Source: Macrostomum hystrix (lineage: Eukaryota > Animalia > Platyhelminthes). Taken from it: a stretch of DNA of 64,000 bases. Where the stretch lies: the NCBI GenBank assembly GCA_950097015.1, contig CATNEN010000007.1, forward strand, positions 6,076,001 through 6,140,000. Direction: 5' to 3'. The position numbers and the translations under genes are program-made. Positions 46,484 to 56,500 of this stretch are shown one piece after another. A model generated the notes under the pieces. That model did no database searches. It was not told where the DNA came from and saw only the letters and a list, made by a program, of their open reading frames with translations. Position 1 is the first letter of the stretch. Every line of letters starts with the position of its first letter.

Positions 46484-47039
46484 CAGACTTTTAATTCTGT
46501 TGTTGTATTAAAATCATTCTACTCATTAGTAGTGAAGTGCAGCAATGAAGAATAACGACTGAAATCGTGTGTTTTTTGTGTCACTCATCTGCTTGTAACT
46601 GCTTTGATTTTTTTTCTGCTAACTGCACATGTGAGATAAAAGTACTTGTGTCAGCATTCAAGAAGCCCTGTTAGGCAGTGCGAGCTGGTTGCATTTTAAT
46701 TCTACTCCTGTGCGGTTTACTGTTATCCCAACTTAGTATCTGCTGATTGTGAATAAACAATAACAGTGCTGTTCTGTTGGGACTGCTCAATGACCATACT
46801 TTTGGCCTCTTTATTTCACATGCTCAAATATTGTACATTCTTATAGTCATTTTAGAGTCATTTTCCCAGATACTTGATTACCTGTTTGTGTTCAGTTCAC
46901 CTGTCAGAAACATGGGTACCAGAATCAGCTGGAGTAGTCAATTTTGATGTGTGTGGCAAACTGTGTGCCAGTCCATGGACTGAACGATTGTACACATCTT
47001 TGGGAGAGCCGCTCAATAGCTGCGATTGTGCCAGTCTAT

Positions 47040-47495
47040 CTCAGCCTATCTCACAGGGAATCTCACCCTATCTCACAGGGAATCTCACCCTATGTCACAG
47101 GGAATCTGACCCTTTCTCACAGGGAATCTCACCCTATCTCACAGGGAATCTCACCCTGTGTAATATAGATTCACAGGGAATCTCACCCTTTGTAATATAG
47201 GCTCACTGGGAATCTTACCCTCAATATAGACACACAGCGAATCTCACCCTTTGTAATATAGGCTCACTGGGAATCTTACCCTCAATATAGACACACAGGG
47301 AATCTCACCCTGTGTAATATATATTCACAGGGAATCTCACCCTTTGTAATATAGACTCACTGGGAATCTCACACTCAGTAATATAGGCTCACTGGGAATC
47401 TTACCCTCAATATAGACACACAGGGAATCTCACCCTCAGTAATATAGACTCACAGGGAATCTCACCCTTAGTAATATAGACCCACTGGGAATCTC
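47040..47495. repeat. Minisatellite built on CACAGGGAATCTCACCCT, abutting the first ASK1 acceptor
   Basis: Variable-length units ending about 14 nt before tttcag|47510. Confidence 0.9.
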
Positions 47496-47509: not shown

Positions 47510-50500
47510 GCCTCGAGCTTGCACAGTCAGCAGGCCGCCTCCAGCGCCGGCGCCGCCGCGGTCGCCGCAGCCGCAGCAGCTTCAGCGCCCGGTTCAAATG
47601 CCACCCGACTGCGCGTCGTTTGTGTCGTCGACCAGGCTACGCCCCAAGCAACCGGCGCCACGGCGGCGCCGCGACAGAAGGCCTTTGCGGATGTTGAGCG
47701 CGCCTGCAAGAGGTGAGCACACTTTGAGAAGGATCTAGTACCTGATATTAGCGGGTTTAACTTAATTCTTGCTTTTAAAGTGGGTCGTATTCTCGTGCTG
47801 CAGATATTTAGGTTGCTAAATTCTAAATATGCAAATATGTAATAGGAACTGAATATCAATGGAATTTAATAACTTACTTTAATTTGTTCTGTTTGAAGCA
47901 TTTGTCCAGCCAGGATTGCGCACTCATCTTCATGCAAATTTTACTAGTATACGTTGTAAGTCGTTATTATTAGGCGTATTGCAGATAATTAAGCATTAAT
48001 TTAAATTCCTTGACAAATAATATAAAAGGTAGGGTACAATAATTATATTCATGTTGTTCGAGTGTCTGTTTTAGAATTCCCAATAGGCTGTTACTAGTAT
48101 TTTGCTAAAAGTGCATTTTGTTTTGCACTATTCGCGCATTTAGTTTGTCTGCTTTAAACAGCTTTCTATCCCAGTTGCTTTCGGAAAATTTATTGTATTA
48201 TTTAATGACTGGTACCAAACATCAAAGAATCTACGAGTAAATAGCCTCTGAAAAACTGACACATTTAAGCATTCCCCTTAATACATACAGGTGTAGACAC
48301 CCTCTAACAAACCCACAGGTGTACACACCCTCTAACAAACCCACAGGTGTACACACCCTCTAACAAACCCACAGGTGTACACACCCTCTAACAAACCCAC
48401 AGGTGTACACACCCTCTAACAAACCCACAGGTGTAAACACCCTCTAACAAACCCACAGGTGTACACACCCTCTAACAAACCCACAGGTGTAAACACCCTC
48501 TAACAAACCCACAGGTGTAAACACCCTCTAACAAACCCACAGGTGTAAACACCCTCTAACAAACCCACAGGTGTAAACACCCTCTAACAAACCCACAGGT
48601 GTACACACCCTCTAACAAACCCACAGGTGTACACACCCTCTAACAAACCCACAGGTGTACACACCCTCTAACAAACCCACAGGTGTAAACACCCTCTAAC
48701 AAACCCACAGGTGTAAACACCCTCTAACAAACCCACAGGTGTAAACACCCTCTAACAAACCCACAGGTGTACACACCCTCTAACAAACCCACAGGTGTAA
48801 ACACCCTCTAACAAACCCACAGGTGTAAACACCCTCTAACAAACCCACAGGTGTACACACCCTCTAACAAACCCACAGGTGTACACACCCTCTAACAAAC
48901 CCACAGGTGTACACACCCTCTAACAAACCCACAGGTGTAAACACCCTCTAACAAACCCACAGGTGTACACACCCTCTAACAAACCCACAGGTGTAAACAC
49001 CCTCTAACAAACCCACAGGTGTAAACACCCTCTAACAAACCCACAGGTGTACACACCCTCTAACAAACCCACAGGTGTACACACCCTCTAACAAACCCAC
49101 AGGTGTACACACCCTCTAACAAACCCACAGGTGTACACACCCTCTAACAAACACACAGGTGTAAACACCCTCTAACAAACCCACAGGTGTAAACACCCTC
49201 TAACAAACCCACAGGTGTAAACACCCTCTAACAAACCCACAGGTGTAAACACCCTCTAACAAACCCACAGGTGTACACACCCTCTAACAAACCCACAGGT
49301 GTACACACCCTCTAACAAACCCACAGGTGTAAACACCCTCTAACAAACCCACAGGTGTAAACACCCTCTAACAAACCCACAGGTGTAAACACCCTCTAAC
49401 AAACCCACAGGTGTAAACAGTCTCTTAGAAAGCCAAATATCAAAGAAATGTTTTTCAGCATTATATTTTTTAAAGGCCTTTCTAATTCTTAAAAAATAGA
49501 GTATTGTTTAGCCCTTGCTTTCAATTTTCGTAGATTTTTAATCAACAAATTATTTTCTTTTTAAGTTAGTTTGAGAATGACATAATAAATGCAGTATTGA
49601 ATGCAGCACTCCGTACTCTATAGCAACAAGTCATTCCATGGCATTCAATTTCGCAGTGTTGGCCTAACCTGCATCAGCTTTGCTCACATTATCAACGATG
49701 TTGATAGCGCGGCTGAGCTGTTCTACAGCGCGCACGCTGTTATCGTCATGCTGTCGGATCTGGTAAAAATTCCCTCCGTGTTTGTTGGAGATGCCGATTG
49801 AGAAATTGCTACTGCCATTGACGCTGGCTAGGTTCATTGGAACCTGATTCTGGGTTTGCTTTGATTTCCTAGACAAGGCATTTTGAAGCGTGTCTTTCAT
49901 GGTGGGTTTCGGGTTTTTGGAGTTTAGGTGTGAGACTTTGAGGATTTACTGTTTAGTAGGGGTGAAATTTTAAGCCTTCTTTTTCAGGATGAGATTTTGA
50001 GATTATGAGCTGTACTCTGTGGAGGTTTTAGGGAGTTTTTTCTTAGGAGGGGTGAGATTTTGAGCCGTTTTTAGGGGTGAGATTTTAAGCCGTTTTTAGG
50101 GGTCAGTTACCCAGCAGTTTTTAGGGATGAGATTCCCAGCCATTTTTAGGGGTGAGATTCCCAGCAGTTTTTAGGGGTGAGATTTCCAGCAGTTTTTAGG
50201 GGTGAGATTCCCAGCAGTTTTTAGGGGTGAGATTTCCAGCAGTTTTTAGGGGTGAGATTCCCAGCAGTTTTTAGGGGTGAGATTCCCAGCAGTTTTTGGG
50301 GGTGAGATTCCCAGCCGTTTTCAGGGGTGAGATTTTGAGCCGATTTCTAGGGGTGATTTTGAGCCGATTTCTAGGGGTGAGATTTTGAGCCGTTTTTAGG
50401 GGTGAGATTTTGAGCCGTTTTTAGGGGTAAGATTCCCAGCCGTTTTTTGGGGTGAGATTCCCAGCCGTTTTTGGGGGTGAGATTCCCAGCCGTTTTTGGG

Positions 50501-53500
50501 GGTGAGATTCCCAGCCGTTTTTGGGGGTGAGATTCCCAGCCGTTTTGTTGGGGTGAGATTTTGATCAATTCTCTCTGTGGGTGTGATTTTAAAGTTTCTT
50601 TGCTTAGGAGAGATGAAATTTAGTTTAATCTTAAAAGACTTGGATGAGGAATCTTAGTCTAACTTTTGGGACTTGAAAACAGCAGATGTAAGACTTGTGT
50701 TCATGGTTGACATTTTTTACTGGTCAATAAATTTCAGACAGGTAATCTATTAAAAACGTGTTTTTCTTTATCGGATAAATTTTTTGCAATCTCACTGATT
50801 CTGCCTGCTAGATTTAAGTCTGAAACAGCGCTTTGCCGGCATGTGTAAATATTTTTAAGTCTCTTTGACCCCCTTTTACCGCGCCCTGTTGTTGTTCTCT
50901 ATATTTTTATTAGTCGTTGATTATTTTTTCAGCTTTTTTTTTGTTTTATTTTACCACAGAAAGTGTTTTGCGTTTTTCGATTTAGTCAGTAAAATACTAG
51001 CATTTTTTAAATCCTTTCTATATGGCTTTTGCAGTAGTAATGAATATTTGTGCAAGTCCTGGCTGGACAGGCATGCGTGAATGCACCGCTTGCAGTATTC
51101 AAAATAAGCGCATTTAGCGGGCTTGGAAAAATGATCCACCCCTGGGGAAAAGACGACAGCTGGCTGTATTGACAGGAAAGGAATAAGAGAGAAGAGAGAT
51201 GAGATACGGTAGAGATGAGACAGGAGAGAGTTGAGATACGATAGAGATGAGACAGGAGAGAGTTGAGATACGGTAGAGATTAGACAGGAGAGAGTTGAGA
51301 TACGGTAGAGATTAGACAGGAGAGAGTTGAGATACGGTAGAGATGAGACAGGAGAGATTTGAGATACGGTAGAGATGAGACAGGAGAGAGTTGAGATACG
51401 ATAGAGATGAGACAGGAGAGAGTTGAGATACGATAGAAATGAGACAGGATTGAGTTGAGATACGGTAGAGATGAGACAGGAGAGAGTTGAGATACGGTAG
51501 AGATGAGACAGGAGAGAGTTGAGATACGATAGAGATGAGACAGGAGAGAGTTGAGATACGATAGAAATGAGACAGGATTGAGTTGAGATACGGTAGAGAT
51601 GAGACAGGAGAGAGTTGAGATACGATAGAGATGAGACAGGAGAGAGTTGAGATACGATAGAGATGAGACAGGAGAGAGTTGAGATACGATAGAGATGAGA
51701 CAGGAGAGAGTTGAGATACGATAGAAATAAGACAGGATTGAGTTGAGATACGATAGAAATGAGACAGGAGAGAGTTGAGATACGATAGAGATGAGACAGG
51801 AGAGAGTTGAAATACGATAGAGATGAGACAGGAGAGAGTTGAGATACGATAGAAATGAGACAGGATTGAGTTGAGATACGGTAGAGATGAGACAGGAGAG
51901 AGTTGAGATACGGTAGAGATGAGACAGGAGAGAGTTGAGATACGATAGAGATGAGACAGGAGAGAGTTGAGATACGATAGAAATGAGACAGGAGAGAGTT
52001 GAGATACGGTAGAGATGAGACAGGAGAGAGTTGAGATACGGTAGAGATGAGACAGGAGAGATTTGAGATACGGTAGAGATGAGACAGGAGAGAGTTGAGA
52101 TACGATAGAGATGAGACAGGAGAGAGTTGAGATACGATAGAAATGAGACAGGATTGAGTTGAGATACGGTAGAGATGAGACAGGAGAGAGTTGAGATACG
52201 GTAGAGATGAGACAGGAGAGAGTTGAGATACGATAGAGATGAGACAGGAGAGAGTTGAGATACGATAGAAATGAGACAGGATTGAGTTGAGATACGGTAG
52301 AGATGAGACAGGAGAGAGTTGAGATACGATAGAGATGAGACAGGAGAGAGTTGAGATACGATAGAGATGAGACAGGAGAGAGTTGAGATACGATAGAGAT
52401 GAGACAGGAGAGAGTTGAGATACGATAGAAATAAGACAGGATTGAGTTGAGATACGATAGAAATGAGACAGGAGAGAGTTGAGATACGGTAGAGATGAGA
52501 CAGGAGAGAGTTGAAATACGATAGAGATGAGACAGGAGAGAGTTGAGATACGATAGAAATGAGACAGGATTGAGTTGAGATACGGTAGAGATGAGACAGG
52601 AGAGAGTTGAGATACGGTAGAGATGAGACAGGAGAGAGTTGAGATACGATAGAGATGAGACAGGAGAGAGTTGAGATACGATAGAAATGAGACAGGAGAG
52701 AGTTGAGATACGGTAGAGATGAGACAGGAGAGAGTTGAGATACGATAGAGATGAGACAGGAGAGAGTTGAGATACGATAGAGATGAGACAGGATTGAGTT
52801 GAGATACGGTAGAGAAGAGACAGGAGAGAGTTGAGATACGGTAGAGATGAGACAGGAGAGAGTTGAGATACGATAGAGATGAGACAGGAGAGAGTTGAGA
52901 TACGGTAGAGATGAGACAGGAGAGAGTTGAGATACGGTAGAGATGAGACAGGAGAGAGTTGAGATACGGTAGAGATGAGACAGGAGAGAGTTGAGATACG
53001 GTAGAGAGTTATTGGAGTTAGTCAATCCACGCCAGAGAATAACCAGTGCCCTTGTTTATTAACTAAATAATATATCGTTTCTATCCTAAAACTCACTAAA
53101 AATTAACTATGAGTGCTACTCGGTTTTCAGTAGCTAGTCTCGGATACGGCAACCAAATATTGATCATATGGTCCTAATTTGTATATATTTAGTACCTTGA
53201 TGAAAATTTCAGGTTTGATTTCAATTGATTGATGTTTTAAAAAACTAACACAGGCTAGATGTTGAGCTGCACAAGGTGCTATTTACTCACCTGGACTATG
53301 GCACAACGACTGCTTTGCACGAGTTTTACAACTCCGAAGTGGCCATCACGGAGATGTCCGCCAAGGTTTGTCATCCTTGTTGTCTCCCAGAGTTTGTACG
53401 GCCGGCTGTTCTGCTAATTAACTAATTGTTTTATTTCTTTAAACTAATCTTTTTGAGGTGCTTTTTTCGTTTCTTTTCATGTGCATTTGAATCGAAGTTA

Positions 53501-56500
53501 GTGCGCATTATATACTACTAACCGAACTACTGAGGGTTCAAATCCCAGTTAAGGTGAAAATAGTTTGTATCCTTGAAAAAAAGACAGTTGATTTCCCTTG
53601 GCTTTAGCTGTAAAATTGGCTCTACTCAGCATCAGCTGTTCTTGTCCATGGACTGACTAGCTGTACACAGCCTTTAGATGCGTACATAGCTGCGGCTGAG
53701 CCGCTGTCTGTACTGTACATCTGGCCCCATACTGGGTATTGTACCAACGCTTTTATAATATTTCCTATGAGGATTCGAACTTTAGACCTTCGGTCGCGAT
53801 AAGATTATTCATAACACAAATTTAGTATTCATTTATATACTTGTGATATAAGAATATCTATATTAATATGGTGAACGATACGATTATAAATCGTAATTCA
53901 TGTTTCCATCTTTTCTAATCGATATTTTGAGACACCTCAGACTACCTTTAGATTCTGATTGCGAGCTTTATAGGCGGTAAGTGAGCCCCCCCTGCAATCC
54001 GACTGTTTTGGATGGCGGCACTGGCGCGGCCGGGAGAGGCACTTTGGAGTGGCATGCAAATTCATGCAAATCTCGGCCAGCCTGCATCCCGCAGCTACTC
54101 ATCATCTACCCAGCCCCCCCACCCGGCTTGGCCGACACTCCAACGGATCTCAGAAGGGGAGCCTTGAACCAGCCCCGGATAATGTATGGAGCACTGCCAC
54201 TGCGCGTGTGTGTGCCGGCCTTCACATTTTCTTTATCCTGCTCTTCGGCGCTTGCTGCTGCTGCTGCTGCTGCTGCTGCTTCTTTGCATTGCCCAGCCTA
54301 ATGGGTGAAATTGGCCCTCCATCGTTTGCCTTTTCCCCTTTTTACCCGGCTCCCTATCCCACTCCCCACTCTTCCCAATCCCAATCTGAGCCATTGCGCA
54401 CTTCTTCCCAGTTTTGAGTTGCCGCTCATATCTCAGCTCAAGTTGGGAAAATTCTGTCTGTTATTATTACTTGTTACTCTTCGTGTACGCGACTCGAAAT
54501 TCATCTATGCCCGCGTGCACTTTTATTGCAAACGAAATCCCATCTTTGGAATGATTTGCGCAATTTATTTTGAAAGAGTAAACACTTCTCCGATTATGCT
54601 ATTGTTAACAGTCAGTCTATGCGTGAACACTATTTCCTTGCGTGCACACTCATTAGTCTACTTATTCATTTTTTAGAATGCTTCTCTCATCATGAAACTT
54701 TCGTTCATGTTATACTCCAAATATACTTTAATAGTAATCTGTCCACTGTTCTCATAAGTATTATTCATAGCAGCTCAATCCTGTCTCATACCAGGTGCAA
54801 CAGTACTCGATCCTCTATCACCTGGGCGTTCGGGAGAATCTCGGCATGCGAGACAACATCATCCTTGTGCACGACTTAAATAAGGATGAGACTGACTCAC
54901 TGAGGGTGAGCACTGAGCCCTCCCGAATCCAACTAGCTGCTCTCCCACTGCCCCGAATCCAACTAGCTGCTCTCCCACTGCCCCGAATCCAACTAGCTGC
55001 TCTCCCACTGCCCTGAATCCAACTGGCTGCTCTCCCACTGCCCCGAATCCAACTGGCTGCTCTCCCACTGCCCCGAATCCAACTAGCTGCTCTCCCACTG
55101 CCCCGAATCCAACTGGCTGCTCTCCCACTGCCCCGAATCCAACTAGCTGCTCTCCCACTGCCCCGAATCCAACTGGCTGCTCTCCCACTGCCCCGAATCC
55201 AACTGGCTGCTCTCCCACTGCCCCGAATCAAACTAGCTGCTCTCCCACTGCCCCGAATCCAACTAGCTGCTCTCCCACTGCCCCGAATCCAACTAGCTGC
55301 TCTCCCACTGCCCCGAATCCAACTGGCTGCTCTCCCACTGCCCCGAATCCAACTGGCTGCTCTCCCACTGCCCCGAATCCAACTGGCTGCTCTCCCACTG
55401 CCCCGAATCCAACTAGCTGCTCTCCCACTGCCCCGAATCCAACTAGCTGCTCTCCCACTGCCCCGAATCCCGCAGAACTCGCTGTCACCTTCCTACCGGC
55501 TGTTTCCGTACCTGGTGGACGAGAGCACAGGCCGCTGCGTGGTGCCGGACTCGGCCTGTCACAAGCTGCTGCTTGCCAACTGTCACGGCGGCCACGATCA
55601 CAGTCCGGACACGCTGCTGGTGTCTAAACTCAAACGCGCCCTAAGAGAAGTTGAATCGACTTCCAAGGCTCAACTAAAGGCCAAATTCTTAGACGACCTG
55701 CAGAAGGCGCGCAACGAATACAAGGGCGACAATTTGAAAGACTTCCTACGCCGGATGCGGTCCCGACTGGACGATCCCGACCTGATCTCGCCGGACATCA
55801 TTCACAACATGCTGCTGAGCTATCGCAAGGCACAGGACTACTCGGCCATGGTTGGCCTAGTTGAGGAGCTGAAAACTTTGCCTCACGCCAAGAACCTAGT
55901 GGACATTGTCGGCATTCAGTACCTGTACGCGTTCGCGCTCAACCGGCGCAACCGGCCGGGCGATCGCAAGGAGGCTCTCGACGTTATCCTGCGCGCTGTG
56001 CAGCGCTGCGACAAGCCCGTGCCAGACATGCTCAGCCTAGTTGGCCGCATCTACAAGGACATGTTCACGGACTCCGACTACACTGACACTGAGAGCCTGG
56101 CCCACGCCACTGAGTGGTATCGAAAAGGTTTCGATGTGAGTTCGACTCATCTCTTCTGTCACTCTCTGTCCACAATTCAGCCCCAACCTTTCCCATTCTG
56201 TTTCTCCCCTCTCTCCCCTGCTGCTCTTCTGTCTTTCTCCCCTCTCTCCCCTGCTGCTCTTCTGTCTTTCTCCCCTCTCTCCCCTGCTGCTCTTCTGCCT
56301 TTCTCCCCTCTCTCCCCTGCTGCTCTTCTGTCTTTCTCCCCCTCTCCCCTGCTCCTCGTATCTCTTTCCTCCCTTCTCACCTATTCATCTATCCTCTCTT
56401 TCAATTATCTCTCCCATTTCTCATCTCTATAACCATCCTTATCCACCCTTGTCTCCAGGTGCAGCCGAACGAGTATTCCGGCATCAACCTGGCCACCCTG

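Follow-up and report, generated by a model that had tools for sequence, protein, structure and literature searches.

Can a single gene supply two versions of the domain through which a kinase is regulated? The textbook example of a stress kinase gated by redox state is ASK1, in which the thioredoxin-binding domain at the N-terminus acts as the gate. The question is raised by an ASK1 homologue in a 64-kb stretch of the genome of the flatworm Macrostomum hystrix (64,000 nucleotides, positions 6,076,001 to 6,140,000 of contig CATNEN010000007.1, assembly GCA_950097015.1), which we call the window; positions below are counted within it unless another contig is named. In this gene the gate domain is encoded in part by a short exon, here called exon 2. 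An earlier note, made by a model from the letters of the window, had proposed that the intron ahead of exon 2 hides a second exon, here called exon 2a, which arose by tandem duplication and is used in the place of exon 2. We consider it likely that 2a is a real, conserved, tandem-duplicated alternative exon that replaces exon 2 in ASK1 mRNA, and that the worm in this way probably makes two versions of the regulatory N-terminal domain of ASK1. The evidence consists of a spliced RNA contig, the reading frames of the exons, conservation in a second species of the genus, and homology to the second exon of a paralogous ASK gene; we take these in turn and weigh three alternatives against them.

Two exons for one slot in an ASK-family gene

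The spliced gene model was searched against Pfam one exon at a time. Exon 2 matches DRHyd-ASK, exon 3 matches MAP3K_TRAF_bd, and the exons downstream match MAP3K_TRAF_bd/TPR-S, ASK_PH, Pkinase and HisK-N-like. The full set (DRHyd-ASK, MAP3K_TRAF_bd, TPR-S, ASK_PH, Pkinase, HisK-N-like) is that of an ASK-family MAP3K (MAP3K5/6/15), so the gene is an ASK1/MAP3K5 homologue, as it had been named from the letters of the window. For its orthologue in Macrostomum lignano, the nearest solved structures are 8QGY and 5ULM.

The exons that concern us all lie on the plus strand. Exon 1, as read here, spans 47510-47712 (acceptor tttcag/, donor AG/gtgagc) and ends with two bases of a codon, while exon 3 (54795-54905, 111 nt, phase 0-0) holds the start of the MAP3K_TRAF_bd domain. 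Between donor 47712 and acceptor 54795, adjacent and on the same strand, are two exons for the one slot. The canonical exon 2 (53254-53365, 112 nt, preceded by acag/ and followed by /gtttgt) encodes the LDYG... block of the thioredoxin-binding (DRHyd-ASK) domain; it matches the Pfam profile PF20309 with E 2.1e-5 and aligns to human ASK1 in 8QGY. Exon 2a (49657-49762, 106 nt, phase 2-0, 35 full codons) has the same phases as exon 2, an open reading frame and two intact splice sites, the acceptor ttcgcag/ and the donor CTG/gtaaaa. It is placed in a 630-nt island of unique sequence amid tandem arrays at 48287-49419, 50048-50560 and 51186-53007. When re-read from the sequence, the coordinates, splice sites and phases of both exons agree with those of the earlier note.

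The lengths of the two exons set a simple rule for how they can be combined. Both 106 and 112 are 1 mod 3, and either exon can be joined in phase to the donor of exon 1 and the acceptor of exon 3; the kinase is therefore in frame when exactly one of the two is included. If 2a is followed by the whole of exon 2, a TGA stop is met at codon 4 of exon 2, and if neither exon is used, exon 3 is read out of frame and ends in a stop at codon 28. The proposal that including both exons or neither would frameshift the kinase is thus borne out by frame arithmetic, with early stops either way, and the two exons probably exclude each other. In the mechanism we propose, 2a would be an old tandem duplicate residing in the intron between exon 1 and exon 2, and would be spliced between exon 1 and exon 3 in the stead of exon 2. 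Exon 2 would be used in the other isoform, and transcripts carrying both exons or neither would presumably be removed by nonsense-mediated decay.

A transcript that joins exon 1, exon 2a and exon 3

Three public runs from one 2020 study (X1, X2 and X3) were used as RNA evidence, their contigs being compared with the repeat-free island at 49420-50047. Each run carries 42-50 Mb of contigs for a genome of 220 Mb, and on this ground the runs look like transcriptomes. One contig in X3 is 165 nt long, has a depth of 6.3 and covers 49655-49764 with 0 mismatches, leaving 28 loose letters before this stretch and 27 behind it. Both loose ends are unique in the window: the first is 47683-47710, the tail of exon 1, and the second is 54797-54823, the head of exon 3. 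Two bases on each side are ambiguous, since the intron before 2a and exon 1 both end in AG, and the intron after 2a and exon 3 both begin with GT. The contig thus reads exon 1, 2a and exon 3 in succession, with the exact junctions 47712>49657 and 49762>54795 and with exon 2 skipped. These are the two junctions that had been predicted for 2a before any RNA was consulted, and the single contig of 165 nt has both. A retrocopy is an unlikely source of this contig because the stretch is single-copy in the genome.

Conservation in M. lignano and the order of the two exons

A search with the 35 residues of 2a against 1.84 billion representative proteins returns one match, a MAP3K gene model of M. lignano (UniRef100_A0A1I8JIM8, here P0001; E 6e-12), and a second M. 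lignano model (P0002) carries the same 2a segment. Between the two species 32 of the 35 residues of 2a are identical (91%), the changes being A>G, S>T and S>T. Elsewhere in the gene the identities to M. lignano are 28-29/30 in exon 2, 36/37 in exon 3 and 159/176 in exon 4; exon 1 reaches 51/76 (67%) with two indels. Judged from these alignments, 2a is kept as well as the conserved domains of the protein (about 90-97%) and far better than the loose part in exon 1. Conservation at the level of the domains, and well above that of the loose N-terminal part, argues for purifying selection on 2a since the split of M. hystrix and M. lignano; the conservation in related species that the earlier note expected of a true exon is therefore found in this pair. 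The two species belong to different major clades of the genus. PMC10468722 terms them 'somewhat diverged'. The 66-aa open frame around 2a (region 17-58) has no homologue among proteins of 36-115 aa, a search limited by this length window.

The same M. lignano models suggest the alternative that survives best. Both P0001 and P0002 read ...CKR, then 2a, then VQFTHLDYG..., that is, 2a followed by an exon 2 that has been cut at an internal AG. The models agree with the M. hystrix transcript in having a 2a orthologue (32/35) between the sequences of exon 1 and exon 3, and they differ from it in setting 2a in tandem with the cut exon 2, whereas in the RNA contig of M. hystrix exon 3 follows 2a directly. 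If the models were taken at their word, the real product would be 2a plus a shortened exon 2, spliced via an acceptor at 53276, and the worm would make an ASK1 with a duplicated insert in its thioredoxin-binding domain. The window of M. hystrix would permit such a product: exon 2 holds an internal AG/G at 53274-53276 (plus strand), 2a joined to 53276 stays in frame and gives the M. lignano model (2a plus 30 residues of exon 2), and tblastn places the M. lignano models on exactly these pieces of the window. Against this stand the X3 contig, which links 2a directly to exon 3, and the nature of the site itself, an AG that lies within the coding region and lacks a pyrimidine tract. A second block has no equivalent in human ASK1; in the alignment 2a is left over ahead of the exon 2 part, and within P0002 Pfam DRHyd-ASK matches only the exon 2 part. 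Automatic gene models also frequently fuse exclusive exons at whatever site preserves the frame. We hold tandem inclusion to be unlikely and the order seen in the M. lignano models to be probably an artefact of automatic annotation, in which two exclusive exons were fused; the two public models should then be corrected. As for the word 'hidden' that was first applied to 2a, the exon is real, but it is already present in two UniProt models of M. lignano, in which a truncated exon 2 is joined to it. P0001 also shows local differences from the window and from P0002, for example a short SRSS in place of VGLVEEL, and this looks like an error of the model.

Homology of exon 2a to ASK exon 2

We return to 2a as an alternative to exon 2 and ask whether the two share a common origin. 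The gap-free alignment of 28 residues between 2a and its own exon 2, from which the duplication had been proposed, holds on re-examination: 7 of the 28 residues are identical, the BLOSUM62 score is 29, and the best ungapped segment scores 35. Shuffling gives a p of about 0.002-0.003 for this single comparison, which is borderline alone.

A second ASK-family gene in the M. hystrix genome (contig C30) offers a further point of comparison. Its exon 2 (C30:619100-619211, 112 nt) is 54% identical to the exon 2 of the window, and kinase motifs follow about 10 kb downstream of it. Against this paralog exon 2, 2a attains a gapped score of 45 (shuffle p 1.5e-4) with 11 of 35 residues identical, and the single 2-codon gap in the alignment is exactly the difference between 106 and 112 nt. 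When the paralog exon 2 is searched against the 64-kb window by tblastn, 2a is the second match after exon 2 (E 0.038, with noise from 0.5); in the reverse direction, with 30 kb of the paralog locus as the target, 2a has its best match in the paralog exon 2 (E 0.016, with noise from 1.5). The two are thus reciprocal best tblastn matches, in register and with equal phases. They also have in common the 12-mer GGCCTAACCTGC, identical in every base and placed at offsets 5-16 of either exon; it occurs once in the window. Furthermore, 2a begins with V-G-x-T, as does the equivalent human block, while the own exon 2 of M. hystrix has lost this start. The paralog score, the reciprocal best matches, the 12-mer, the spliced RNA contig and the 91% conservation in M. 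lignano make the case for homology strong, and judging from these comparisons we regard 2a as a genuine and ancient tandem duplicate of exon 2. It is homologous to ASK exon 2 through the exon 2 of the paralog, similar in length and identical in phases, and the description of 2a as an old and strongly diverged duplicate can stand. The paralogous gene itself has no 2a-like exon in the 30 kb around it, where tblastn matches the paralog exon 2 only, and none in the 14 kb upstream of its exon 2.

The 12-mer is an observation in its own right. It lies at 49661-49672 in the window and at L008:7104-7115 (C30), and in both places it spells four identical codons, G-L-T-C. Outside it, 2a and the paralog exon 2 are about 45% identical at the DNA level, and an exact match of this length is surprising for an old duplication. 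It could reflect constraint at the RNA level or a short gene conversion.

Several points weigh against reading 2a as an exclusive alternative to exon 2, and we collect them here. The spliced form of 2a is known from one contig in one run of one study; the sequence that X1 and X2 have over 2a is all unspliced. The case for exclusivity is built on the frame logic and the single X3 contig, the conservation was measured at the protein level, and the M. lignano models, as described above, place 2a beside a shortened exon 2 and not in its stead. The likeness of 2a to its own exon 2 is borderline and no greater than that of the strongest chance matches in the window, where three other places score at least 35 against exon 2 in a six-frame scan of the 64 kb. 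Finally, the profile alignment of 2a to the ASK N-terminal domain that the earlier note had called for gives no match to Pfam DRHyd-ASK (PF20309) at E up to 10; Pfam searches with 2a, with its extended frame and with the 78-aa minus-strand frame described below gave no matches either. The link of 2a to the domain thus comes from exon-level homology and position, not from the profile. The same profile, with a cut-off of 26.6 bits, gives 24.7 to exon 2 and 27.9 to the paralog exon 2.

Some of these points would also suit a second alternative, in which 2a has no function, being a cryptic exon that splicing noise brings into some transcripts, and resembles exon 2 by chance. One low-depth contig in one run, three other places in the window that equal the score of 2a to exon 2, and a segment without a Pfam match are what such noise could produce. 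On the other side, chance likeness would have to account for reciprocal best matches that are in register and of equal phases, and an exon without function would have to retain an open frame, two intact splice sites and a protein sequence 91% identical to that of M. lignano, all of the changes being conservative, when the loose part in exon 1 of the same protein has fallen to 67% with indels. We judge splicing noise to be quite unlikely.

The preferred reading, exclusive use of 2a or exon 2, has well-known precedents. Mutually exclusive exons that arose by tandem duplication and are enforced by the reading frame are known from FGFR2 IIIb/IIIc and from many cases in insects and mammals. Here, as in that type, neighbouring homologous exons have nearly equal length and equal phase, inclusion of both or neither breaks the frame, and one exon is seen replacing the other in a transcript. 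The M. hystrix pair differs in being very diverged (about 25-31% identity) and in lying 3.5 kb apart, with the intron between them filled with tandem arrays. For ASK1 a literature search found no publication on mutually exclusive exons, the papers that mention both being unrelated as judged from titles and abstracts, and as far as our searches reach such splicing is unreported for this kinase; we know of no alternative exon at the position of exon 2 in human ASK1.

Unspliced contigs and an antisense frame

X1 and X2 have contigs colinear with the genome over 49643-50012 (X1 49643-49923, X2 49823-50012), the strand of which the contigs do not give; the part of the island at 49420-49642 is covered by no contig in the three runs. 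These unspliced contigs have about half the depth of the spliced 2a contig. They may come from pre-mRNA, from an intron retained behind the GTAAAA donor, or from a separate (possibly antisense) transcript.

The last of these leads to the weakest alternative: a 78-aa open reading frame (ORF) on the minus strand (49664-49900, read from 49900 to 49664), codon-for-codon in register with 2a, might be the conserved coding unit, expressed from the unspliced X1/X2 transcript, with the plus frame as its shadow. Although it runs from ATG to stop, spans the G+C-richer island, lies under colinear contigs (49643-50012) and is in codon register with a plus frame, so that either could hold the other open, we find it highly improbable, given that it is the plus-strand reading that is spliced precisely at AG and GT into ASK1 and resembles ASK exon 2, that the contigs carry no strand information, and that the minus ORF has no Pfam match and no homologue among proteins of 43-136 aa, in a search limited by length. 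The genome holds no second copy of this ORF, of the 2a peptide or of the island. The ORF is most likely the open antisense shadow of a coding exon, helped by chance.

What the exchange would change in the protein

If 2a and exon 2 are used in turn, the swap would exchange a piece of about 36 residues, a strand-loop-helix-strand unit of the N-terminal thioredoxin-binding (DRHyd-ASK) domain, between the two isoforms. The hydrophobic core pattern is kept in 2a (F-x-H-[LI], A, FY, [AV][VI]V, [ML]S), and the conserved loop LD[FY]G-T-T has become I-I-N-D-V-D-S. The loss of LD[FY]G from 2a, pointed out when the exon was proposed, is thus the replacement of a whole loop. The two isoforms should fold alike but expose different loops at the surface of the regulatory domain. 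That this amounts to a different regulatory surface is a reasonable inference from the residues exchanged, and the isoforms might then differ in regulation, for example in their sensitivity to thioredoxin.

The human protein shows where in the gate this piece would sit. In the thioredoxin-binding domain of human ASK1 (MAP3K5; 8QGY), exon 2 aligns to the block ...HFGKLDFGETTVLDRFYNADIAVVEMS; 2a retains the hydrophobic core positions of this block and differs from it in the LD[FY]G-T-T loop, which is replaced. According to the cryo-EM report on 8QGY (PMC10972558), binding of TRX1 protects residues 128-143, 184-195 and 206-259 of human ASK1. By alignment, residues 128-143 fall within the exon-2 block or beside it; these numbers are approximate, since the chain in the deposit exceeds the 88-973 construct by about 10 residues.

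A conserved exon swap in the gate domain would be a natural experiment, in which one loop-bearing module is replaced and the rest of the protein is left untouched. If the isoforms differ in thioredoxin binding or in how they pack against the TPR domain, the swap would point to the residues that matter. Since Macrostomum is amenable to RNAi and transgenesis, the matter could be tested in a regenerating animal.

Tandem arrays and putative RNA pairing

How might the choice between the two exons be made? Competing RNA pairing, between docking and selector sites, steers exon choice in Dscam1 exon 6 and 14-3-3 zeta, and two features of the window recall such systems. The first is a 19-nt site on the plus strand at 54771-54789, 6-24 nt upstream of the exon 3 acceptor, which is an inverted fragment of the unit of a 32-mer satellite. 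This satellite forms an array of 57 copies between 2a and exon 2 (51186-53007); the site is 95% complementary to 7 of its units and 84-89% to many more, with a duplex energy of -34 kcal/mol. Site and array may form a selector/docking pair, and their pairing would loop out exon 2. The second is an arm on the plus strand in the intron after exon 1 (47895-47925) that can pair with 51050-51080 through an exact core of 13 nt, or over a longer stretch with a bulge. This putative pairing would loop out 2a. We offer both pairings as leads, not findings.

The likeness to Dscam1 exon 6 and 14-3-3 zeta consists in a putative site before the exon 3 acceptor that can pair with an array between 2a and exon 2, and in a second putative pair that would loop out 2a. 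The difference is that the arms here are units of satellite arrays, not conserved unique sites. A 13-nt core is within chance for 7 kb of sequence, and one arm of the other pair is a satellite unit; pairing at 54771-54789 would also mask the pyrimidine tract of exon 3. RNAduplex calculations over the whole introns were uninformative.

Joined to the protein, these pairs lead to a bolder proposal. The worm would make two ASK1 kinases that differ in the loop that TRX1 binding protects in human ASK1, one gated by thioredoxin and the redox state and the other insensitive or tuned to another partner, and the choice between exon 2 and 2a would be made by competing satellite RNA duplexes, that of 51186-53007 with the exon 3 acceptor region and that of 47895-47925 with 51050-51080. 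In this complete form the proposal is speculative, and we think it rather doubtful.

The remaining arrays differ from one another in unit and position. A 28-mer is repeated in 40 copies between exon 1 and 2a (48287-49419), a 25-mer in 20 copies just downstream of 2a (50048-50560), and a 30-mer in 18 copies at 54922-55470, starting 17 nt after the exon 3 donor. A further array lies just upstream of exon 1 (47038-47495), and its core and that of the 25-mer array, GGGAATCTCACCC and GGGTGAGATTCCC, are reverse complements of each other. If both were transcribed, these two arrays could pair over many copies and would bracket exon 1 and 2a. Nearly every intron near the 5' end of the gene is filled with a different satellite.

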